A stretch of 64,000 bases of DNA from Adineta vaga (GCA_021613535.1 CP075493.1:2170001-2234000); one strand, 5' to 3'. Shown: positions 45,837 to 60,898, counted from the first letter of the stretch. Notes: a model not told the origin generated them from the sequence alone. Program-made: numbers and translations.

Positions 45837-47276
45837 ATGTCGCGTAAAATTTCTCAACCACGTTCAACTGGTTTAAAAGATATATCGAATAAATTCTCTA
45901 AAGTTCAAATCGGTACCAAAACGTAAGACAAATATCTTATGAAGGCTTTTCATTAATCATATATATTACATAGAACTAACCAAAAATCTCCAACTAAACC
46001 ATCTGCTATTGATAATCTCATTGACTCGATTAAAAATGGAAAATATAAACGAATTATTGTTCTAGCTGGAGCTGGTATTTCAACGCCAAGTGGTATTCCT
46101 GATTTTCGGTAAGTAATTTCAATTGAATTATTTGCTTTATAATCGACATTCCTTTTAGAACACCAGGGACAGGTTTATATGATAATCTTCGACGGTATAA
46201 TATTCCATATCCAGAAGCGATATTTGAATTAGATTATTTCTATCGTAATCCAAAACCATTTTTTCATTTGGCTAAAGAACTTTATCCTGGCCGATATGTT
46301 CCAAATGTAATTCATTATTTTATTCGATATTTACATGATCAAAATATTCTTCATCGTGTTTATACACAAAATATTGATGGACTTGAACGAAGTAAATCAG
46401 ATCGAAGGAAATATTCTAGAATAAATTTCTTCCTATTCTATAGTGGCTGGAATTCCAGCAGATAAAATTGTCGAAGCACATGGAACATTTATGACAGCAA
46501 CATGTCAACGATGTGGTCAAAAGTATACCTGTGAGGATATTCGTCAACGAATTGTCGATGATGAAATACCAAAATGTACAAAAAATTCACGATGCACAGG
46601 CGTTATTAAACCAGATATTGTTTTCTTTGGTGAAGATCTTCCACGACGATTTGATATGTATTCACGTGATTTACCAATATGTGATTGTTGTATTGTTATG
46701 GGCACATCATTAGCTGTTGCTCCTTTCTCGGATATTGTGGATTCAGTATCACGTGTGACAGTACGTCTTTTAATCAATCGTCAAGTTGTGGGTACATTTT
46801 TATCTCCGCGATCACATGATGTGACGATGATTGGTGATTTGGAAGTTAATATTAAAGAATTTCTAACAAAATTAGATGTTATTGATCAAGTAATGGAATT
46901 AATGAAAAAAGAGAATGCTGAAAATGAAAAACATCGAACAATTCAAATGAAAACAATGGCAACAAATTCAACAACGAATAATCGATTTAAGTCAGCTGAA
47001 AAATTTATTGAACAATCCGGAAATTTTATTACATTAACTCAACCAAAACAAGATCGACGAATAACAACTGAACCGAAAATAGTTTCGAATGAATCAACTA
47101 AATCAATGATTGAAAAACATAACAATGCCTTGATCTTCAATCGACGAGGAACAAAACCAATTTTACCAGTTATTCCATCGAAAAAACTCTCACCATCATC
47201 ATCATCTTCTTCATCTGAGTCATTAGATAGTTCACTATCTGAAACAGAGTTGAAACCGTTTGTTTTTAATCGGTAA
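45837..47276 (+). CDS. Class I NAD-dependent deacylase, SIRT3/SIRT2-like (4 exons)
   Basis: [56 protein letters not shown], CxxC...CxxxxxC Zn site, [18 protein letters not shown]. Confidence 0.95.
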
Positions 47277-47582: not shown

Positions 47583-49314
47583 TTAATAAAAATTGCCATG
47601 AAAAGATGCAGGTATATGTACTGGTAGATAAGCACGAGCCAATTCTTTAAACGTTTTTCCATCAAGAACGAGTAAAAAGGATCGTTTGCCTTTTTGATCT
47701 AGAATAATCGATAAGACAACTCCATCGTCTTCTTCAGCATCGGATGCATCAGGTCGTGGAACAAATATGGGTTCACTTGGTGATGTATATGGTTCTTCCC
47801 ATTTGTTAACTTCTTCTTTTGTTTGAAGATCCAATTTAATTAATGCATCAAATAATCGTCCTGGTGTTGCTCGATCAGCATAAACATATCGATATGGTTT
47901 GCCATTATAATTCGGATTAATACGTGGTAATTCAAATTGAACTGGCACAAGACTATGTGCATGACTAAAGCAATGACTACCTTTGGGTTCTCGTGCATTC
48001 ATATTAGGTTCAACACATGTATTAGCTTCTAAATCTAATTCAAATCGTCGAACATAACCAGCACCAGATGGGAAGATATTTTGTCGTAATTTATCCACAT
48101 ATAATTCGCTGATAATTCGTGGATCATCAAATGCACAAATATCAACAATGATCTTCTTCGTATTCTCGTCAAATTCATAAGAATTTATATGATGAAAATG
48201 AAAAAATGCCGGTCCAGGAATATAAGCAACTTGTTCACCAGTATCTAAACTAATGACACGAAAATATGTTGGCATGGTATCACCATTCCATTGAAACATA
48301 GATGATGCCAATCCACCAGTCATTAAACACCAAAGACCAGATAATTTAGCAAAATGATATGGAATTTCACTGAGAATTAAATAATTCTCACTAAGAGATG
48401 CTGAATGCATATAACAAGTATTTGGCGATGGAAAACGAAAAGCTTTTGTTGTGTTTTTAATACGACGATTATAATTCTTTGCACGTTCGTTCATACCAGT
48501 TGTTAAATGAAGAAAACGACGATCAGCAGCAAGTAATTTATCAAATTGATCATCATCATCATCTATAGGTGAAATTCAATATCAAACTTGATTAAAATTA
48601 AATCCGATTACCTTTTTTGTCATCTGCTGATAATTCTTCTGGAATGAATGCAACATCAATAAAACTTCCATTATTTGTCATTCGACTACTATAGCCCACT
48701 GTCATTTTACGTTTTGCATCATACATAACATGTGCTGTTGTTGTTGACATTATTGTTGAATCTTTTGGTCGACCATATGGTAAAGTGACAAGAGGACCGA
48801 TAGGTTCAAGTGTATTTGGATCAAGAACATTGCCAACAGGAATTTCTGTTAATGCTAATAATTCATTTTGAACCATTTGAACCGTTACACCTGTATCATC
48901 AGTTGACATTGCTGGATCTTTACCATAGAAAAATGATTGAAATCGACCAAAAATTGATTTACATGGATCAGTACCAAATTGTCGTGTCATCAATCGACCA
49001 TTTTTAACTGATTCAGTATAAGTACGAGATTTCACGAATGAACCACGAAATTGAAGTGTTTGTGATGATCCATCAATACTATATTTTTGTATATAAGCAA
49101 AACCATCAAAAATATGACTGAAAGTCGTTGCTGGATCATTATTAATTTCATGTGCACCAGGCCCATTTCGATACAAATTGCCTTTTAACCAATCAGGAAT
49201 TTGTCCTTGAAAATCAATGGTTTTTTCATCTGTATATTCATTTGTTGATGTATATAGATTATAATTATTCCATATTTCATCATCAGTTTTTTCACAACAC
49301 TGCTTTTCTGTCAT
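47583..49314 (-). CDS. Carotenoid cleavage oxygenase (BCO/RPE65 family), 2 exons
   Basis: GQIPDWLKGNLYRNGPG, HIFDG, DPCKSIFGRF, all four Fe-binding His (TTAH, YMHS, FHHIN, SFHG), FELPRIN, PSEPIFVPRP, EDDGVVL. Phase-1 intron 48563-48611. Confidence 0.95.
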
Positions 49315-49433: not shown

Positions 49434-51667
<2,234 letters not shown>

Positions 51668-52570
51668 GTTTTTTTTTGAGATTCTGCTCGTTTAGAAAAA
51701 GAACGTTTTCTTTCGAAAATAACCCGGCTATATATATGCTAGGGAGCAATGTACCGAAATTTGTTTTTTCCTTTTCTCATGTTCTGTTACTTATAGAAAA
51801 AGTTGTGAGGACGTTTTCTTTTCTGTTCATCGCATTCGACATTCTTGATGGAGTTCGAGAGAAAAAAGTTTTTCCTGTAAACACTCGAGCCTCGACGAAG
51901 AAAGACGAGACTACGTGGAACGGAATCAGAAAGAAATATAAAATTATATCATCTCTCTCTCTCTCTTTGATTGCAAAAGAATAAGTGGAAGACCTGATCA
52001 ACCAGTCAATACAAATCGAACAAAGATGTCGTCAGTATTATGTACTGATAGTTTTTAGAAGACTTTGATCATCAGACATGTTCTGTGATTATTTGATGCT
52101 ATATCAACCAGAAATAATTTGTTATCGCTTGTCATATGTCATACGCATGTTGATAAATTATATGCCCAGATGTATCTAATTACACGATCAATTTTTATTC
52201 AATATTAGAACTTTTTTTCTATGACATGACAGATCTTCTACATTGTTTTTTTTCCACTCATACATCAACTGAAAACTCGTTTGGAGTCACGAATACTTAT
52301 CTTAATTGATTTATAATGTATACAATCATTCTCTGTTTTTCTTTAAAATGGAATTATATTTTTCTTCTATTTTTAACAAAAATCAAAACTTTTTCTATAG
52401 TATAAAACGAATTCATGTCTTTTTTATGATGAGTGTATCTATATAATTACGATATTATTCTTCCATCAAAATGAAAAATGTATAATCATATAGATAAGAG
52501 CCTTGGAAACATTTATAAACTTCTAAATTATTCGTATTGAGAACAATCATAATATAGAAATGAAAGTATG

Positions 52571-55500
52571 CTAAGTACTCAGTGGTGATGAACAACTTGT
52601 TTGAGTACCATAAGAAACTACAACAACTGGCACGTTGAAAGCAGATGACCAATCAATTGGATTATTCATCACATGACAAAAACCTGGACGAGTACTCAAT
52701 TGAGGACAATTGAGAAGAAAACCTATGATCATAGCATACGGTCCAGTCGGATTTGTCGGACGGCAATAACCATGCGATATTGCCGCTGACACACCGAAGT
52801 ATTCTCCTGGACCACAAGCTTGACCTGCTCGACGTTTCGGATCGAAACCATCCGTACAAATCGGTTTAATCGCTGTAGCAGCTGTACCGTGAAATGCAAA
52901 AAATCCTCGTGCCATATCGGGTGGAACAGCAATACTGAGAGATTCAACACCTTTATAAAAACGTTTCAATGATGCACATTGATCTGCTAATGCCATATTA
53001 TAATCAACACGAATAATCGGTGGTACAGATGGTAACCAATTGTCACGTGCAAATTTCTCAGCTGCTTGAAATAGACTCGGAAGATAATCACCCATTTTTT
53101 CGAACATTTCTCGTTCTTTACATGTTCTTCCTCGATGTGAATCATTATCAATTAGAGAACAAGATGGACAAACATCTCGACCACACGTAAAACATGTCTG
53201 ATAGCCACGCGTTCTTTTTATTAGTCCATTACATTCTGAATTTGGACAAAAGACTTGATCGAACATACTCGAATTATTATTCAGATAAATTTGAATTGAT
53301 TTCTTACATAGACCAATAAATGCCTCTCGTTCAGGAAAGATATCCAATAAATCTTCTATGGCAATATTTGTTTTACATTTCGATCCATTACATTGTAAAG
53401 GATAGATTGAACTTAACTGAGCTGTTGCACATCGACAATAAGCATGATCACATGCACGGAATGTATTGGTTGAATAGGATATTTTGCTACAAAATACACA
53501 TTTTTGTTTATCTCGAATGATATTACCATCAACTGAAAGCTTCGTTAAGAACTGTTTAACTTCTGTTTCGCATGATTCTATCAATGAGAGATTTGTTGTT
53601 GGTTCAGCATAGAGAATAATTGATTTTGTTCTTGATTTATAAGTTATATGACATCCCCAATTAATCCAAGTTTCGTCGAGTGTTTGAAGTTGAATATCAG
53701 CTGGTTTTTTTCGTCCAAAAAAATTAGCCACTGTGGAATTCAACTCAAGTACACGGAATCGTTGTCAAATATATCCGAATAATCACCAATTTGACGCATC
53801 AATTCACCTTGTTGTACTTGTGGACCACGAATTTCAATCCAAACATTTGATTTTTCTATCTTACGAACTTCAAGTTTTAATTTATTTGCCCAATCTTGAA
53901 TAATCTTCTGTAAGAAAAGTTCATCGAATAATTGTTTCTGTCGATCATTGGTTATTTTAATAATAATTGATGATGTTGCTTGAGCAAGCATACTTGCTGC
54001 TAAAGCTGTCTTTTGTGGAACTCCTCCATGGAAAAAACAACGAATAGCACCACGAAATTTTTGTTGTTTTTGATGAATGGATTGTTGATGAACTTGAATT
54101 TCAAATTGTTTGGCTATTTGTTGAATTAATGTCTCAAAATCAGGATATAAATGAGGATGAGTGACTGTTACTGTTGCTGTACTATCAATTTTCCATGTAG
54201 AATCTAGTTTTGGAATGATTTCTTTATATAATTTAAGTGCGGATTCACGATTCATAGCGGTGATAAGAAATGTTTGTGCAGTAGAATCTTTGTTTTCTAA
54301 ATCATTCACCGTTGGTAAGACATGTTTTTTTACGAGTTGATGACTTGTTCGATTTCGAACGGTGATTATGACGGGTATTTGACAAAAGTCTGATTGAAGA
54401 TTTGTTTTCGATTGTTCACATTGTTGATGATCAACAAAAAAGATATGTGCTGATGATGAACCCAAATTATCCTTATGTGTTTGTCGTAAACTGATTTTTA
54501 ATGGATTTATAGGTCGTAAAATTTTGCGTACAAATGCTTCATTTGTTTCGCGTGGCAAATTGATCAATTGAATCCCTGGTTGAATTCTTACACTTCGTCG
54601 ACCAAATCGTCGACAATCAACAGCATATGGAACGAGTCGATCCAATATTTCTTTATCACTTAAGAAACTATTTTCTGCTGGAATGGTCAACACTAATTGA
54701 CGACCCCATGAATCTTTTTCATTCATATGTGTACCTGTCGTCGATAATGATAGAGCTTCTTGAGAGCAGATGTGATGTGCTGGTAGTTTTGCTGTTGCTC
54801 TTTGAAAAGCTTCCATTGATTTCAATACAATATAGAAAGGTGGTGCTTCATAATCATCGTCGTCGTCGTCGTCGTCGTCGTCACCAAGTTTTTTTCGACG
54901 TTCTTGAAAATTATTCTCTCGAATATCGTGTCGACTTATATTAAGCTTTGTTTTTAGCCATATCTGTAGTTCTTCAAACGTTTCACATGGAACTTGTTGA
55001 AGATTAATTCGAAGAGCATCTTCCATGATTTCGATTGCTGAACAAATCAAACCGTTTTGAAATGTTGCTCGAATGAGACCACATTCAATAATTTTCACAT
55101 TTGTTTTGGATAAAATTGGTTCTAAAATGGATTCTACATGAGCTCGATCTCTTTTTAGACCCCATATGCTTAATCGAGACGATAATCGATCATAATCATG
55201 AACAAGCCATTTCGCCCATGGTTCCGAACGAACATTATTCAATACAGTTCGTATCTGATTATCAGTTGATGCGCCAACATTTTCTCGTACGAGTATTTGT
55301 TCAATTGGAGAAGCTGGTAGATTTCGTGAAGGAATTTGATGAAGACGATCAACAACATATTTTCCTGAAAGTAATCGCGTAATAGACATAGTTACAAAAT
55401 ACTGTTGTACATGTTCATGTGCATGTTGAACATAGATACTTCGATTAGCAATACTGGCAGTATATCATTGTGAATAAAATGAACACCTTCATTAGGTAGA

Positions 55501-58233
55501 TGCGGTACAAGTAGATGACCCACTTGTGTAGGAAAAACTTTTCCAAGATGTTTTCCAATGATATCCTCATCAGTCCATTGTTTAGTAAATATTCTATTGC
55601 CAGTTCTTAATTTTGAGCGTGGATTAGTGATGGTTTTTCTGTAAAATTCTATAGAATTTTCAATAAATTCAAGTACTTGATTATTAAGTCCATTCATAAA
55701 TGAATGTTTAATTTGACATGACTGACAAAAATCGAAATTATTTTCAGGTATTTTTCGACAGGTTTGACATTTATTGGATTTTCGATCGATTTTACCAGCA
55801 GACTTCCACTCATTGAATATCGTACAGAGACGAAATAGATCACTATTCGATTTTTCTGTATCAAATGTGATGCGATTATCTATGGTATCTTTCGATAAGA
55901 ATAAAGAACCCGGTGCAGACAAAATAGCAGCTATAGTAGTCACTAATGAAAGTAATCGTTGACCATCTTTTTGTTCTGCATAGATATTGGTCATGAATGC
56001 ACTCAAACGAGGATCAATTGAAAGTTCAGCGAATAGTTCACCACGCCATGTTATGTCTTTCTTATCATCAATACACACTAAATCTGTTAGAAGATCCATT
56101 GAATGACGTATGGAGTCTGGCATAGGTTTGGTAAGAAAGGGAAATTCTTGTATATTGATACGTAAACGTTTGAACTGTAAAAGACTAAGATCCAATGATG
56201 AACGAAGAATTTCAGGTTCAATATTTTCTTCTTTTAAATCGGTATCATCATATAAACGAACACATCTTCCTCGTTTCGTATAATTAACTAAATCTCGACG
56301 TTTATTAGCTGAAAAGCGTGAGATACGAACTGTTTCAAGAACATTCCATCGATGTTGCATGTCAAAACGTAGTTCACGCACAAAACCTGTATCAATGACA
56401 AGTTGGACATTCCGAATAGGTAGCGAAGTTTCAGCAATATTTGTACAAAAAATAACCATTCGTTTCTTGGATTGTTTATCATCGAAGTCGAGTATTTCCT
56501 TCTGTTGTTCAAATGGTAATGACCCATAGAGTGGAAATACCACACAATCATTTGGCATTTTAGTAGAGAAAACCTCAATAGCTTTTTCAATATCTCGTTG
56601 ATTGGATATAAATACAAGTGTATGTTTTGTATGTTTGTGATAGAATCGTAACAACGTCGGTATAACGTGTACTTCAATAACTTTGTAATCTGGACAGTCA
56701 GTCGGTGGTGGTAGATTTTCTACTGTAACTGAATGTATATGATTTATGGTATTTAGCGTCAGAGCAGAAGAAAGATCAAAAAACTTCAGAAATGGTTTTG
56801 GATTCATAGTTGTGGAAACGATAACAACGAAGAAGTCCGTAGGGCGTTTCGTTAGTAATAATTTAGCAATACCAATGATAATATCTGTATTCAGAGATCG
56901 TTCATAAACTTCATCGATAATTAATACGCGTACTCGACTTAAATCTGGATCCATTTGATATTCATACATAAAAGCTGTGTCTGTCATAAACATGATATTT
57001 GTGCCAATTACACAAGCACTCTTTCGCGCTTGATCATTACCAACTTGATAGCCCACCGAATTACCTATTACTGTACCGTCAAATTCATCCGCAACTCGAT
57101 GTGCTAGAAGCATACAAGTTACTGGTCGTGGTTGAATAGATACAACCAGATCGTTACGGAAATATTCGGCTGCATATTGTGGTAATTGAGTACTTTTACC
57201 ACTGCCTGTTTCAGCTGTCACGAAGACTATTTTTTCTTCTTGTAGTCGTTCACAAAACTCAGTTCTTAATGTAAAAATAGGTCGCAGTGTCATTTTTCGT
57301 TCATTCATCCTCATTTCAAACGATTTCAAATGCTGATGTCGTTGATGAGTCTGTACTTTGTTTGTATTATTTTGAGATTTCTATTCAGATCAATAGAATA
57401 AAACCTATACACTAAATATTAGTAGAACTTACTTCATCAGAATCATTGTCACTCACATGAACAGATGAATGTGATCGATGCTTTCGTATATTTGTATCCT
57501 TATCATTTGCATTCGGATGTAAGTATGAACAATTCGATGTTCGACATTTACTTCCATGTTTACATTTGCTCTTACGAGGTTTTGGATGAGTCGCAGTACA
57601 ATCAAAATTGTTGCATTGTACACCATATTTACATACACGCCAGTGTGAAGAATGCATGTAGGAACAATCAGCAGTGAAGCAATTATCACCATGACGACAT
57701 TGTATCTGTTTTGAACGAGATTTTCCATGAGATGAATATGAATCATCTCGTGCTGTCGGACCTGCAAACACATCATCTTTTGTATTTAATAATATCAATT
57801 TCCATGTCCATCAATATTCAGCAATGAGTAAACAACACTTACTAGTGAATTTTGCTGGTACATCGTCATCATCAGTCGAATTATAATCAGTTCTAGATCG
57901 ATTTGAGTATGAACTATAATCGTCTGATTGTCTTGAAACTTTTGATTGATCGTTCATCATGTTCTCTTCATTTCCATTAAGTTGACATCTTATACGAGTT
58001 TGTCCACGTGTAAATGTTTCATTCCATGCGAAAACAAAATCATCAGCTTCCTCTTCACTTTTAAATCCATTGATTAATGCATACTGTTCAGATGAATTTG
58101 ACTGACACATATAGATATCTATAAGTCGTGAATCGATGTCGAATTGAATCGACAATTCACCAGTAGTCACATACATTGAAAGGCCTGTAACTCGAACAGT
58201 CCATTGTTTTGTAGCTGTATAAGACGATGTCAT
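52571..58233 (-). CDS. Giant multidomain protein: RRM, 3x CCCH, degenerate DEAH/RHA helicase, RRM/KH-like region, RING-IBR, PARP-like ADP-ribosyltransferase (3 exons; two frame breaks)
   Basis: Exons 58233-57843, 57761-57433 and 57380-52571 splice in phase. The three long ORFs of exon 3 join if one base is added near 55460 and one near 53762 (giving ...ASIANRSIYVQHAHEHVQQYFVTMSITRL and ...IFDKRFRVLELNSTVANFFG). Motifs: AETGSGKSTQLPQY, QPR, DEVY, TNIAETS, CVFC...CDHAYCRC, FCPNSEC...CFTC..DVCPSC...H....C, AFHGT...GFDPKRRAGQACGPGEYF. Confidence 0.85.
54853..54882 (-). repeat. (GAC/GAT)10 trinucleotide tract encoding poly-Asp
   Basis: GDDDDDDDDDDYE within the helicase-ART gene. Confidence 0.85.
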
Positions 58234-59890
58234 GTTTTACTAATGTCTTGAATGGCTGCAATAGTTACTAATTAAAAGAGAAAGTATTTTTGAGAATAAA
58301 CCAACCGACTTAAAAATTTCCAACTAGAAAAAAAGGCTCTCAAGAAGGAGGAACATGAAAGTTTTGTTACTTTATGACACCTGAAATACACTAATATTTG
58401 TTTAAGCCATGTGCTAGACATGTTGTAGTTTTTCATCTCAGATTGTTTGAGGTTCGTCACAGAAAATAATAAACAACTACAAAATTATAGTAAAAGGTAT
58501 TTATCATTGTTGTGATTGTACAACAACTTACAGAGTGTAAAAAACCACGAGGCCATGGTAAATATTATAATTAAAATGATTCTTTAAAAAGAGATTTTCT
58601 GAGAAAACTTTGCAGTTACATATTATTTGACTGTGGTTGGTGGTTGTTTTTTCTACGATGATCTGCATTTGTCTAAACACATGTGTATACTTTTCTAAAG
58701 TTTCGAAGATCAGACGAATTACTATTCAGTTTCTACGATTTGTTTCATAGAATGAATAAAGTTTTCAATGATCGTTCATTTCACCAATGTCGATTATGTA
58801 AATAAGCACTTGACATTAGGCAAGAAAAATATCTAATGATTTCGTTTCGTTTGTTTAAGTGAAAGAAAAGATTTCTTGGAAAAATGTTGTTTTTCTTTCG
58901 ACCTATAGACAAATCTGTATGCTTAATTCGCATCTACAGATGATGAGAATCTATGCAGAATTATAAAAGTTTTCTAATTATATTCTATACAAGAACCAAC
59001 TGACATAGTATATATTGGAAAATAAAACTATGAATTAGTTGAAATATGTCACTCATTAATAGTAAAATTTGCATTGATCCAATCGATTTAAAATATATTT
59101 TTCTGAATATTTCCTCGTGAAACATTCTCTGATTCGTGTTCGAAAGTTAGATGATTCTGTGAATAAATCCCCGTCATCTCGTATGAACATTGAAATAATT
59201 TGATTTGAAGAGTAACTTGAAATACATCACGTACATTTTGAACAAGTCGATTTCTGTTGTTTTATATGTAAATCTAACGGTGAACTAAATGTTCCTGTTA
59301 AACGACGAGTTTGTCGATTGTTATAAAAAATTCCTACGCCCACTTGATCATCTGGTACTTGACCTAAGAAAACGTATAGTTCTTCGTAAGATCGTAGCTA
59401 TAATTCGTACACAAACGATAATCATATCAAGCAGCATAAATGATCCACTTTAAAGCATTGCCTCAAAAGGCATTAGCATCATTTTTCTATGAAATTAACC
59501 TTACAACTAGCTACGATCATTACCAACTCAAGATGGTACAAACGTAGTGCTCTTAAGTTACGTTTCAAGGTTCATAAAATGTCTGACTTTAAAATACTAT
59601 ATGAGATTCTTATTCATTTGAAAAGTATATATGATATAAATAAAATGCCACCGATACTTATGAACTGAACAAGCAAATGCATACATAGAGACGAAACAAC
59701 ACAAAAAAAACTAAACGAAAACAAGCGTTAATATCAATAGCAACAAAAATACTGTCATCATTTGAAATGAAACGAAAGGGAATGTTTAATAATGAACTAT
59801 ACAAGGAACAGAAAGTATTAGATTTTGTTTTACGATAAGAATAAAATACTCAGATCTTAGAAAGAGTTAATCACATGAGACAAATTCTAT

Positions 59891-60898
59891 TTAACATGAT
59901 GCACAATTATTTGTTGATTTTTGTATTCTTTCATTAGCAGAATTATTGGAATTTGAATCAGATCGATTAGCAGCATGTGCTCGATTAAATTGTATGCCTG
60001 AATACATTCGATAAGGATCAATACTACCTGAAAACGTATACAATTTTCTTCCTTTCTTTCTTTCTTGAATCCAATCAATGTTATTACCTGAATCAATCTT
60101 GCTTAAAATCTTCTGTGCACATTTAAGAAAACTTTCGGTAATATTTTCATTATTCATTGCAGATGTCTCCAAAAACATCAGACCTTTTACCAAAGAAGAA
60201 AAAACGAATGAATTTCAATCTTTGTTTTTTTTTCGAATCAATCTCACCATTATCTTCAGCAAATCGACTGGCTTCCGCAAATGTTACTTGTCGTTGTTCT
60301 TCTAAATCTGTCTTATTTCCACATAGTATAATAACAATATTTGGACTAGCTAATGCACGTGCATCTTCTAACCAATTAGCAACAGTATTGTAACTTTCTC
60401 GACTTAAATGAACAATTAAATAAGATAAGAATACACTCATTCGTTTCTTTTACTTTGCTATATCATAGACTAATAAAGCACCGGATGCACCACGATAATA
60501 ACTACGTGTTACAGATCGAAATCTTTCTTGACCAGCTGTCTAAAAGAGAATCGAACGGTAAGAAAGAAAGAAAAAAAGAATTTGTTTATTTATTCATACA
60601 TCCCAAATTTGTAATTTGACATTTTTTTGATTTACATTGATAATTTTCGAACCGAATTCTGCGCCGATTGTATGCGTAATATCGACTTTAACTGAAAGAA
60701 ATCATTTAGTTTATGTTTAAAGTACAAATGATTTTATTTTACATTTATTTTCAAGAAATTGATGTAAAATACAAGATTTTCCTGTCGATGCACTGCCAAT
60801 GATGAGGAATTTAAATAGATATTCTAAAAATGAATGCAATGTACTTGGGAAGAAAAAACATTTAATCAATTACCGTAGGTTTCTGTCGGTTGAGACAT
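59891..60898 (-). CDS. RAB4: Rab4-like small GTPase (multi-exon)
   Basis: [97 protein letters not shown]. Confidence 0.9.

Follow-up and report, generated by a model that had tools for sequence, protein, structure and literature searches.

Can a locus that strings together RNA-binding, helicase-type, RING/IBR and PARP-type modules, with its reading frame broken twice, be a working gene, and what would its product do? The locus lies on the minus strand at positions 52571-58233 of the window, i.e. the whole stretch of 64,000 nucleotides of Adineta vaga DNA that was analysed. An earlier note had read it as a one-component defence effector of about 1,840 codons, possibly of recent origin. We find a gene and most of the announced modules; neither the defence role nor the recent origin is supported.

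Gene structure and frame breaks

Five collinear open reading frame pieces, together with the splice sites, give a model of three exons and two short GT-AG introns. The coding region starts with an ATG at 58233 in exon 1 (58233-57843); intron 1 (57762-57842, 81 nt, GT..AG) is followed by exon 2 (57761-57433) and by a predicted intron 2 of 52 nt (57381-57432, as in the NCBI model), which would instead measure 82 nt if another in-frame acceptor, at 57351, were used. Exon 3, of 4.8 kb, begins at 57380 or 57350 and runs to 52571, with the TAG stop at 52571-52573. Once two read-supported bases are added the product has 1,843 or 1,833 residues, which agrees with the length, and with the predominance of one 4.8-kb exon, estimated earlier. 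NCBI lists this product as hypothetical protein I4U23_000621 [Adineta vaga] (P0026, 1810 aa), with a model that skips both frame breaks and is thus mis-modelled there.

The gene is transcribed, as indicated by a contig of run X16 (2024) that joins 57759 to 57841 and skips 81 nt with CT..AC ends on the plus strand—i.e. with intron 1 spliced; the RNA label of this run is a guess, and its contigs are short, each covering only part of the gene. Among the contigs of the public runs, none covers the whole transcript end to end. The single polypeptide proposed earlier is supported by the positional orthologue of A. ricciae, whose exon 3 is an unbroken ORF of 1,618 codons, and by the paralogue L011, a single ORF of 2,189 codons.

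Compared with the intact paralogues, one base is absent from the window at 55459-55460 and another at 53764-53765, so that both suspected indels are real in the window. At each place public contigs supply the missing base: at the first break, contigs of X1 (2013) and X4 (2022) have an extra C (plus strand) behind 55459, giving D-I-R-A-S-I-A in frame, and at the second, a contig of X4 has an extra A (plus strand) behind 53764, giving F-D-Q-R-F-R-V in frame. These are all the contigs spanning either break, and they come from two studies. Both breaks most probably stem from errors in the assembly consensus, and at worst mark one null allele; the contig with the added base at 55459 is about half as deep as its neighbours, and a heterozygous broken allele at this position is conceivable.

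That the gene would be a recently dead pseudogene, both one-base deletions being truly present in every copy that the sequenced clone has, is very improbable. It would fit with the position of the two frameshifts, outside homopolymers, and with the broken appearance of further family copies in the genome (L012, L013 and a fragment on contig 3). It fits badly, on the other hand, with the presence of the missing base in all spanning contigs, with the 564 and 397 codons that remain open past the breaks in DNA of about 33% G+C, with a dN/dS of 0.13-0.16 downstream of the breaks, and with the spliced contig in the run guessed to be RNA. Paralogue homology continues across both breaks and not one residue is lost. 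In A. ricciae the orthologue is intact and shares its neighbours with the window gene, and dN/dS against it stays within 0.13-0.26 for each of the four segments, also for those past the breaks. The gene is intact and under selective constraint.

Domains of the product

The order of the domains is as follows: RRM-like, three CCCH fingers with Nab2-type spacing, DEAH-family helicase with a zinc ribbon, RRM-like modules, RING1, IBR and PARP-like. The N-terminal RRM-like domain (57979-58209, in exon 1) keeps a beta-alpha-beta-beta-alpha-beta pattern in the family alignment A3, whose profile finds the nucleolin RRM at E 2e-4; Pfam gives no match for this region, and the RRM proposed there is thus weakly supported. 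The one proposed further on is well supported on a predicted model. The family-specific middle region (53767-55458) has no Pfam match, but its AlphaFold model (pLDDT 82) displays several small alpha/beta modules after a beta-rich start (about 55279-55458). One of these modules, near 54283-54591, is clearly an RRM fold (Z 10.8, rmsd 2.1 A for 77 residues), and a stretch of poly-Asp near 54839-54890 forms a linker. VIA-align returns RRMs at Z 9-10.8 for residues 286-396 of this model, and Foldseek returns tandem RRM/KH proteins. The three C-x5-C-x4-C-x3-H fingers are found, as announced, in exon 2 (57517-57699); their best Pfam finger model is zf-CCCH_2, at E 5e-5 and a score of 24.0, just below the cut-off of 25.8, and a family member, P0079, reaches 59 bits with it. 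Across the family the number of fingers goes from 0 to 14. Taken together, the folds and the finger spacing suggest that the protein binds RNA.

The helicase core with its winged helix (55947-57290) matches DHX15/Prp43 across RecA1, RecA2 and the winged helix (E 3.5e-62; residues 21-468 of the helicase piece), and Pfam DEAD and Helicase_C score above their cut-offs. The overall homology to DEAH/RHA helicases claimed by the earlier note is thus borne out, but the box itself is not DEAH: motif II reads DEVY (56904-56915), and motif VI reads KRRDLVNY instead of QRxGRAGR (56280-56309), having lost both arginine fingers. Motifs I (GSGKST, 57189-57206) and V are intact; Ia and III are altered. Motifs Ia, II, III and VI are decayed throughout clade D, the branch of the window gene, which makes an ATP-driven sensor improbable for this copy; the other bdelloid clades, Hydra and protists keep these motifs in canonical form. 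The C-terminal helicase part contains a C-x2-C...C-x2-C zinc ribbon (55716-55769), which is family-wide except in the two metamonad members. As for the HA2-like region reported previously, Pfam HA2_C gives only E 0.18, which is not meaningful, though the DHX15 alignment runs into this region before ending at residue 468.

Next comes a tail made of RING1, IBR and the PARP-like domain, preceded by a small alpha/beta domain (53540-53764) whose second half aligns with the pre-RING1 region of a DEAH11-type helicase-RBR protein, P0111. RING1 (53375-53500) is of the C3HC4 type, and its eight ligands (C89, C92, C105, H107, C110, C112, C125 and C130) are invariant in 50/50 family sequences; the eight Cys/His ligands of the IBR (53120-53248) are invariant or nearly so. 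Pfam IBR gives E 0.0035 for the window copy, below the cut-off, and 1.2e-4 for the paralogue L009; the tail profile matches HOIP RING1-IBR (the HOIP IBR at E 1.3e-5) and classical RINGs, and Foldseek with the tail model returns the HOIP/HOIL-1 RBR. When compared with P0111 by hhalign, the stretch from the pre-RING domain through RING1 to IBR aligns with a probability of 97.4 (E 9e-12), and P0111 carries RING2 at the place where the window family carries its PARP-like domain. By sequence, RING1-IBR is thus judged homologous to that of the DEAH11-type helicase-RBR ligases, the PARP-like domain standing in the place of the catalytic RING2. In the alignment of 50 family sequences, no Cys/His cluster that could be RING2/Rcat is found between IBR and the PARP-like domain, nor after it. 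The RING and IBR modules seen earlier therefore exist but do not form a complete RBR. PMC5758712 defines RBRs by the RING2/Rcat catalytic cysteine, which accepts ubiquitin from the E2; because RING2 is absent, the ubiquitin signalling imagined for this protein cannot run by the RBR mechanism, and without Rcat the role of RING1-IBR may be solely structural.

The PARP-like, ARTD-type domain (52598-53098) contains the strings FHGT, GFDP, GPGEYF (overlapping with GEYFG) and SHGY noted before, and a family motif FC(H/Y)V.NNP. Pfam PARP scores 27.4 bits for a cut-off of 26.7, the tail profile finds PARP12/PARP10 at E 3e-8, and the AlphaFold model of the tail (pLDDT 91) resembles PARP15/14/12/10 at Z 13.9-14.5, with an rmsd of about 3 A over 142-146 residues, so that domain search and predicted fold agree on the terminal PARP-like domain. 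H292, G293 and Y322 are invariant in the 50 sequences, S330 and Y333 are kept in at least 90%, and H292-G293 (in FHGT), Y322 (in GEYFG), and S330 and Y333 (both in SHGY) find their counterparts in the HGT, G.YFA and S..Y motifs of PARP12/PARP10. In the NAD pocket, H292 and Y322 stand for the His and Tyr of the H-Y-E triad, S330 and Y333 for the Ser and Tyr of the nicotinamide site. The third triad residue is Glu in polymerases, and Ile, Leu, Val, Tyr or Thr in mono-transferases. Neither the alignments nor the predicted model displays a catalytic Glu in this domain. In the register of the structural matches, the last strand of the model lies on the last canonical strand, which by sequence pattern would put the third position at about F362-C363, C363 of the FC(H/Y)V motif being invariant. 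In a MAFFT alignment with the genome's own canonical PARP domains, by contrast, FC(H/Y)V falls before the canonical beta5-beta6 and these strands are unmatched; hhalign stops earlier. Because beta5-beta6 have no counterpart in that alignment, the domain may be limited to binding NAD or ADP-ribose. No WWE follows it: the ORF ends 12 residues past the PARP fold, and the next 670 nt contain no open frame.

Family, constraint and possible function

The family extends over bdelloids, Hydra, an oomycete, metamonads and other protists, and constitutes an old eukaryotic kind of protein: helicase, half-RBR and PARP, plus two WWE. A. vaga has at least six loci, some of them broken. Two of the paralogues (L010 and L011) carry a pair of WWE domains C-terminal to the PARP domain; the window copy has none. 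Positional orthologues of the window gene exist in Adineta, Rotaria and Didymodactylos. On account of the few introns, recent acquisition, retroposition or rapid turnover had been invoked; against this stand these orthologues, the neighbours shared with A. ricciae, the low dN/dS and the presence of the family in Hydra and protists. The RecA core is conserved better than any other segment in clades A-C. Clade D differs: there the core ranks among the least conserved segments (61-66%), and the RING1-IBR-PARP tail is the best or near-best (70-77%). By sequence comparison we place the window gene as the A. vaga member of this bdelloid-specific clade D, which has lost both WWE domains and has decayed ATPase motifs. 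The earlier note recognised the full architecture from no characterised protein; likewise, we found no published description of the helicase-RING1-IBR-PARP architecture in the literature searched. The placement in clade D, the loss of WWE, the ATPase decay and the tail as best-conserved part are new here.

The explanation that we prefer, with a probability of roughly 0.55, is that of an RNA-holding, motor-poor protein which brings a conserved tail with coupled ubiquitin/ADP-ribose chemistry to its target, the frame breaks being assembly errors. The RRM, the CCCH fingers, the helicase shell and the RRM-like parts would hold single-stranded RNA or RNP, without much ATP-driven unwinding, and deliver the tail to it; RING1-IBR would dock E2~ubiquitin or ubiquitin, and the Glu-less NAD-binding domain would mono-ADP-ribosylate a nearby protein, its own chain or an RNA end. 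One polypeptide would thus couple ubiquitin chemistry to that of ADP-ribose, where DTX3L-PARP9/PARP14 use two. A pseudo-enzyme adaptor is a less likely but serious competitor: helicase, half-RBR and PARP-like domain would all be silent, and the protein would do no more than bind RNA as a scaffold, or regulate the active paralogues that carry WWE or serve as a decoy for them. ZAP, with its inactive PARP domain, works via recruited cofactors, and the structural matches of the tail include the PARP domains of ZAP and of the inactive plant RCD1. The clade-wide decay of the ATPase motifs, the absence of Rcat and of the catalytic Glu, the possible lack of the strand due to bear the third catalytic residue and the loss of the WWE readers all go in this direction. 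At the opposite, clade D keeps the H, G and Y (50/50) and the S and Y (at least 90%) of the NAD pocket like the rest of the family, and the best conservation of the tail would be unexpected for a mere spacer.

The reading of the earlier note—an innate-immune sensor-effector in one component, which would recognise viral, transposon or aberrant RNA and tag this RNA or its bound proteins with ADP-ribose and/or ubiquitin—appears improbable. The set of domains overlaps that of vertebrate antiviral PARPs, with a PARP domain nearest PARP12/10/14/15 and with CCCH and WWE within the family, and the family has multiplied in bdelloids, with its variable number of fingers. Nevertheless we found no induction, infection or small-RNA data linking the gene to defence, and nothing else in the analysis supports this role or a link to foreign RNA; in a published A. 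vaga data set (PMC10809525) a WWE-bearing paralogue shows moderate expression, with no more than a mild decrease after stress. The window copy undergoes purifying, not diversifying, change, keeps its position and neighbours between Adineta species, and has the finger spacing of Nab2, a poly(A) binder, rather than that of ZAP/PARP12. What stays of the proposed combination is the presence of RNA-binding, helicase-type, RING/IBR and PARP-type modules in one chain; the ATPase motifs are decayed, and RING2 and WWE are absent.

Comparison with known systems

With Nab2/ZC3H14, whose type is defined by tandem repeats of C-x5-C-x4-6-C-x3-H, the window protein shares the tandem C-x5-C-x4-C-x3-H spacing, but it has only three fingers, with a Pfam score below the cut-off. 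With DHX15/Prp43 it shares RecA1, RecA2, the winged helix and motifs I and V, and differs by DEVY, the arginine-less motif VI, the altered Ia and III and the inserted zinc ribbon. The DEAH11/DEAH12-type "Helicase" (Plant I) RBR subfamily (Marin 2010, PMC2904391; here P0111) has the same N-terminal DEAH helicase, RNA-binding/KH-like middle and RING1-IBR, and is, like the window family, described as old and patchily lost. P0111 nevertheless continues to RING2 (Pfam IBR_1/IBR_2), whereas the window family continues to the PARP-like domain and mostly to two WWE; P0111 has canonical HA2 and OB by Pfam, of which the window protein falls short, and the two middle regions have no detectable likeness (probability 14).

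Among PARP12, PARP7, PARP11 and ZAP/PARP13, PARP12 is the nearest to the window PARP domain by sequence, and the His-Tyr pocket without catalytic Glu is like that of mono-ADP-ribosyltransferases. The wider family combines CCCH fingers and a WWE pair, as the vertebrate CCCH-WWE-PARP proteins do. On the other hand, the finger spacing is that of Nab2, the WWE pair is C-terminal to PARP in the paralogues and missing here, a helicase and RING1-IBR are present in addition, and the fold, compared with canonical PARPs, is shorter by about 30 residues in its C-terminal half.

The DTX3L-PARP9/PARP14 and DELTEX systems, which ubiquitylate ADP-ribose and single-stranded nucleic acids according to PMC11460948, PMC11467253 and PMC12568645, may serve as a working analogy only. 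They likewise associate a RING-type E2-docking module, a PARP fold and KH/RRM-type nucleic-acid binders; the window protein, however, has neither DTC domain nor macrodomain, its parts are in one chain, its RING is of the RBR RING1 type, and homology is claimed for the PARP fold only.

Gene model and the two frame breaks

The gene is intact, constrained and transcribed, and its product has the order RRM-like, CCCH, helicase, RRM-like middle, RING1-IBR and PARP-like. In the source genome (100.8 Mb in six contigs), where the window is G000:C1:2170001-2234000 and the G+C content about 30–37%, positions 52571-58233 are filled on the minus strand by five collinear ORFs. Intron 1 (57842-57762, minus strand; 81 nt, GT..AG) is joined across exactly those 81 nt by one contig of X16, a public run of 2024 whose RNA label is our guess. 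Intron 2, read from the sequence and the NCBI model, starts at 57432 on the same strand and ends at 57381 (NCBI model) or at 57351 (in-frame alternative); no RNA contig lies over it among the X16 contigs placed on 52450-58350. Exon 3, also on the minus strand, ends by sequence at the TAG 52571-52573. X16 covers further pieces of exon 3 (52602-53082, 54042-54221, 54474-54838 and 55542-56125) as separate contigs, a coverage that cannot show a single continuous transcript. NCBI lists the gene product as the A. vaga hypothetical protein I4U23_000621 (P0026); in the searches, exons and frame pieces served separately as queries, with P0026 for the full-length chain. This product is not FUN_000621 of the expression tables in PMC10809525, which is an aspartyl protease, the numbering being different.

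The frame is broken by one-base gaps at 55459/55460 and 53764/53765, neither of which lies within a homopolymer. In tblastn with three intact paralogues the match is continuous over both, with a one-base shift and no residues lost. The earlier note had called for correction of two indels with reads, and among contigs from four public runs placed on 52450-58350 the spanning ones do carry the missing base: an extra C behind 55459 in the sole spanning contig of X1 (2013) and in the sole one of X4 (2022, DNA), and an extra A behind 53764 in that of X4. In X1 a contig of full depth starts at 53765, and five letters at its start are unplaced, in agreement with that insertion. In minus-strand orientation the extra C and the extra A both bring back the frame predicted by the paralogues, and the shorter form of the window occurs at either break in no contig among the four runs. 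Tiny introns at the two breaks are ruled out by the paralogue homology across both, and by the contigs that carry the base. The NCBI model (P0026, 1,810 residues) nevertheless bridges both breaks by invented introns, and therefore lacks conserved residues there (HNDILP/YFVTM and DSVYL/TDIQL); once both bases are put back, the protein is 1,843 residues long (1,833 if intron 2 ends at its alternative acceptor). The assembly and the model I4U23_000621 probably need correction at these positions, which flags two probable consensus errors in a chromosome-level assembly and corrects a public gene model. At 55459, on the other hand, contig depth is about half that of the neighbouring contigs, so that a heterozygous null allele may exist at this position.

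Over 55533-57755, X4 and the window disagree at 29 of 2,223 positions, where X1 is nearly identical; X4 may represent another haplotype or another lineage of A. vaga. One X4 contig links 53446 to 53818 and leaves out the 371 nt between them (AT..AC at the ends, 20 letters on the short side, depth 11); this probably reflects a chance join or a paralogue rather than a splice.

Putative RNA-binding parts and decayed motor motifs

The earlier note described an RRM-CCCH-helicase protein, and most of this description stands. The N-terminus has an RRM-like conserved pattern and the family profile matches the nucleolin RRM (E 2e-4), with no Pfam match for this segment. Three C-x5-C-x4-C-x3-H fingers follow at 57517-57699 (minus strand), scoring 24.0 with the Nab2-type Pfam model, whose cut-off is 25.8. 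Family members have between 0 and 14 Nab2-spaced fingers (protists P0041, P0079 and P0058 versus P0001, P0050 and P0047), while the remaining architecture is fixed. The helicase part matches DHX15/Prp43 (E 3.5e-62); compared with these, motifs I and V are intact, but motif VI reads KRRDLVNY instead of QRxGRAGR and motif II, the DEAH box, is DEVY. Family comparison also reveals a conserved, inserted C-x2-C...C-x2-C ribbon at 55716-55769 (minus strand).

The middle region (564 residues), for which no Pfam match was found, was modelled by AlphaFold with 42 relatives (pLDDT 82) as small alpha/beta modules one after another. Foldseek matches this model weakly to tandem RRM and KH proteins, and residues 286–396 form a clear RRM fold (Pub1, Z 10.8, rmsd 2.1 Å over 77 residues, VIA-align on the AlphaFold model); hhalign with P0111, a DEAH11-type helicase-RBR protein, is not significant for this region. 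A run of nine Asp codons at 54839-54890, left out of the read comparison as a repeat, encodes a low-confidence linker here (pLDDT below 50), and its opposite strand holds a spurious 105-codon ORF (54627-54944) with an Arg run. The window protein presumably binds RNA.

An old family and its clade D

The same order of parts is found in Adineta, Rotaria, Didymodactylos, Hydra vulgaris and the oomycete Lagenidium, in the metamonad records “Eukaryota sp. TZLM1-RC/TZLM3-RCL/GEM-RC1” and in several EukProt protists. The A. vaga table of PMC10809525 gives, for one paralogue, Macrostomum and scallop as best BLAST hits. A. vaga itself has at least six family loci. L011, a single ORF, has 2,189 codons and encodes eight fingers and two WWE domains. 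Other copies look interrupted: L012 (G000:C5:2379500-2389000) consists of two overlapping ORFs (1,144 and 1,113 codons), L013 (G000:C1:11833000-11842500) of several pieces, and a fragment on contig 3 (G000:C3:790654-791427) has TAG stops; some of these could be due to assembly indels rather than be pseudogenes.

In a tree of 59 members all bdelloid sequences come together in one clade (support 100) that splits into four sub-clades, Hydra coming next and the protists outside; this tree was obtained by FastTree only, a quick method, with long-branch warnings for the outgroups. Clade D, which holds the window gene, has 15 rows, a support of 100 and a stem length of 0.29. All its members stop directly after the PARP fold, and no WWE remnant was found downstream of the window gene stop. 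Motifs Ia, II, III and VI are decayed in all of them, the window protein included. In comparisons across genera, no segment of clades A–C is better conserved than the RecA core; in clade D this core ranks with the least conserved segments (61–66%), and the last 397 residues (the tail) are best or near-best (70–77%). Clade D can be seen as a natural experiment in which motor motifs and WWE readers are gone and the RING1-IBR-PARP tail is kept; that this tail stayed the most constrained part points to it as the functional core.

To the earlier note, the intron poverty of the gene had suggested recent acquisition, retroposition or rapid turnover. This view does not agree with the A. ricciae orthologue (P0016), which is flanked, like the window gene, by a Ras/Arf-type gene and a TPP-enzyme gene and whose exon 3 is one unbroken ORF of 1,618 codons. 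Against it, dN/dS by Nei-Gojobori is 0.17 for the RecA core, 0.26 for the helicase C-part, 0.16 for the middle region and 0.13 for the tail, values that are approximate since dS is near 1, close to saturation. The orthologue and these ratios rule out a long-dead pseudogene as well as a recent origin. The neighbours in the window are a SIR2-family ORF (46443-47276, plus strand), an RPE65-type carotenoid oxygenase in two ORF pieces (47583-49314, minus), a thiamine-pyrophosphate enzyme (49434-50607, minus) and a Ras-family GTPase (60150-60440, minus), the Ras and TPP genes being the same at the A. ricciae locus (L014); the SIR2-family ORF encodes an NAD-dependent enzyme about 5 kb from the window gene.

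Half an RBR joined to a PARP fold

The tail was modelled by AlphaFold with 50 relatives (pLDDT 91) as a small alpha/beta domain, RING1, IBR and a PARP fold, and Foldseek matches the model to PARP10/12/15/ZAP/RCD1 and to the RBR ligases HOIP and HOIL-1. The RING and IBR modules proposed earlier are borne out: the tail profile matches HOIP RING1-IBR (E 1e-5), and the eight RING1 ligands and seven IBR ligands (the eighth nearly so) are invariant in 50 of 50 family members. So is the terminal PARP-like domain, PARP15 aligning on the predicted model with Z 14.5 and rmsd 3.0 Å over 146 residues (VIA-align) and PARP12 and PARP10 being matched by the tail profile (E 3e-8). The NAD pocket is conserved, its His, Gly, Tyr, Ser and Tyr aligning with PARP12/10; in tail numbering, H292-G293, Y322, C363 and N368-P369 are invariant in the 50 members, S330 and Y333 being kept in at least 90% of them.

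The catalytic Glu, however, is absent from this domain, which falls about 30 residues short of canonical PARP domains. All structural matches (VIA-align) reach the true C-terminus of PARP domains and MAFFT pairs the last strand, N-(L/V)-P-V-x-V, with the canonical Y-P-E-Y-L-I, so that this strand corresponds to beta7; V382 was dropped as third catalytic residue on these grounds. Reading the pattern [E/I/L]-Y-V-I-Y against C-Y-V-V-N would make the invariant C363 the third residue, but MAFFT, unlike this reading, leaves canonical beta5-beta6 without counterpart; hhalign of the tail profile with the genome's own canonical PARP domains ends before the last strands. A putative ADP-ribosyltransferase activity is therefore plausible.

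The RING1-IBR may dock E2 or ubiquitin, and we infer mono-ADP-ribosylation and a possible coupling of the two; by analogy, a role in defence is conceivable. A bolder reading, to which we give roughly one chance in eight, is that the tail is a hybrid enzyme of a new kind, with an ART-fold in place of RING2 and C363 at or near the position of the catalytic Glu. E2~ubiquitin would dock on RING1-IBR, the docked ubiquitin would be discharged at the NAD/ADP-ribose site of the PARP-like domain, and ubiquitin-ADP-ribose conjugates or ADP-ribosylated ubiquitin would be made by one polypeptide on RNA-bound targets or RNA ends. As the PARP fold sits exactly at the site of the RBR catalytic finger, coupled chemistry on RNA-bound targets is a direct and testable prediction.

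The “Helicase” subfamily of RBR proteins is described as ancient and often lost (PMC2904391). P0111, with the Pfam domains KH_DEAH11, RBD_DEAH11, IBR and IBR_1/2, aligns with the tail profile in its pre-RING, RING1 and IBR parts (hhalign probability 97.4, E 9e-12). After the IBR, by contrast, P0111 has a RING2, in the place of which the window family has its PARP-like domain, with no Cys cluster after the IBR: the window protein carries half an RBR. Since the cysteine receiving ubiquitin sits in RING2, as PMC5758712 states for RBR ligases, the RBR mechanism cannot operate in this family. The earlier note did not recognise the architecture from any characterised protein, and our literature searches likewise brought up no paper on a helicase-RING-IBR-PARP protein. 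The crosstalk that links ubiquitin with ADP-ribose (DELTEX, DTX3L-PARP9/14, RNF114) is actively studied and still an open field. To our knowledge it has so far been known only via separate proteins or a bacterial effector; the present family joins a putative E2-docking half-RBR, a PARP fold, ADP-ribose readers and an RNA helicase in one chain, and does so in distant eukaryotes.
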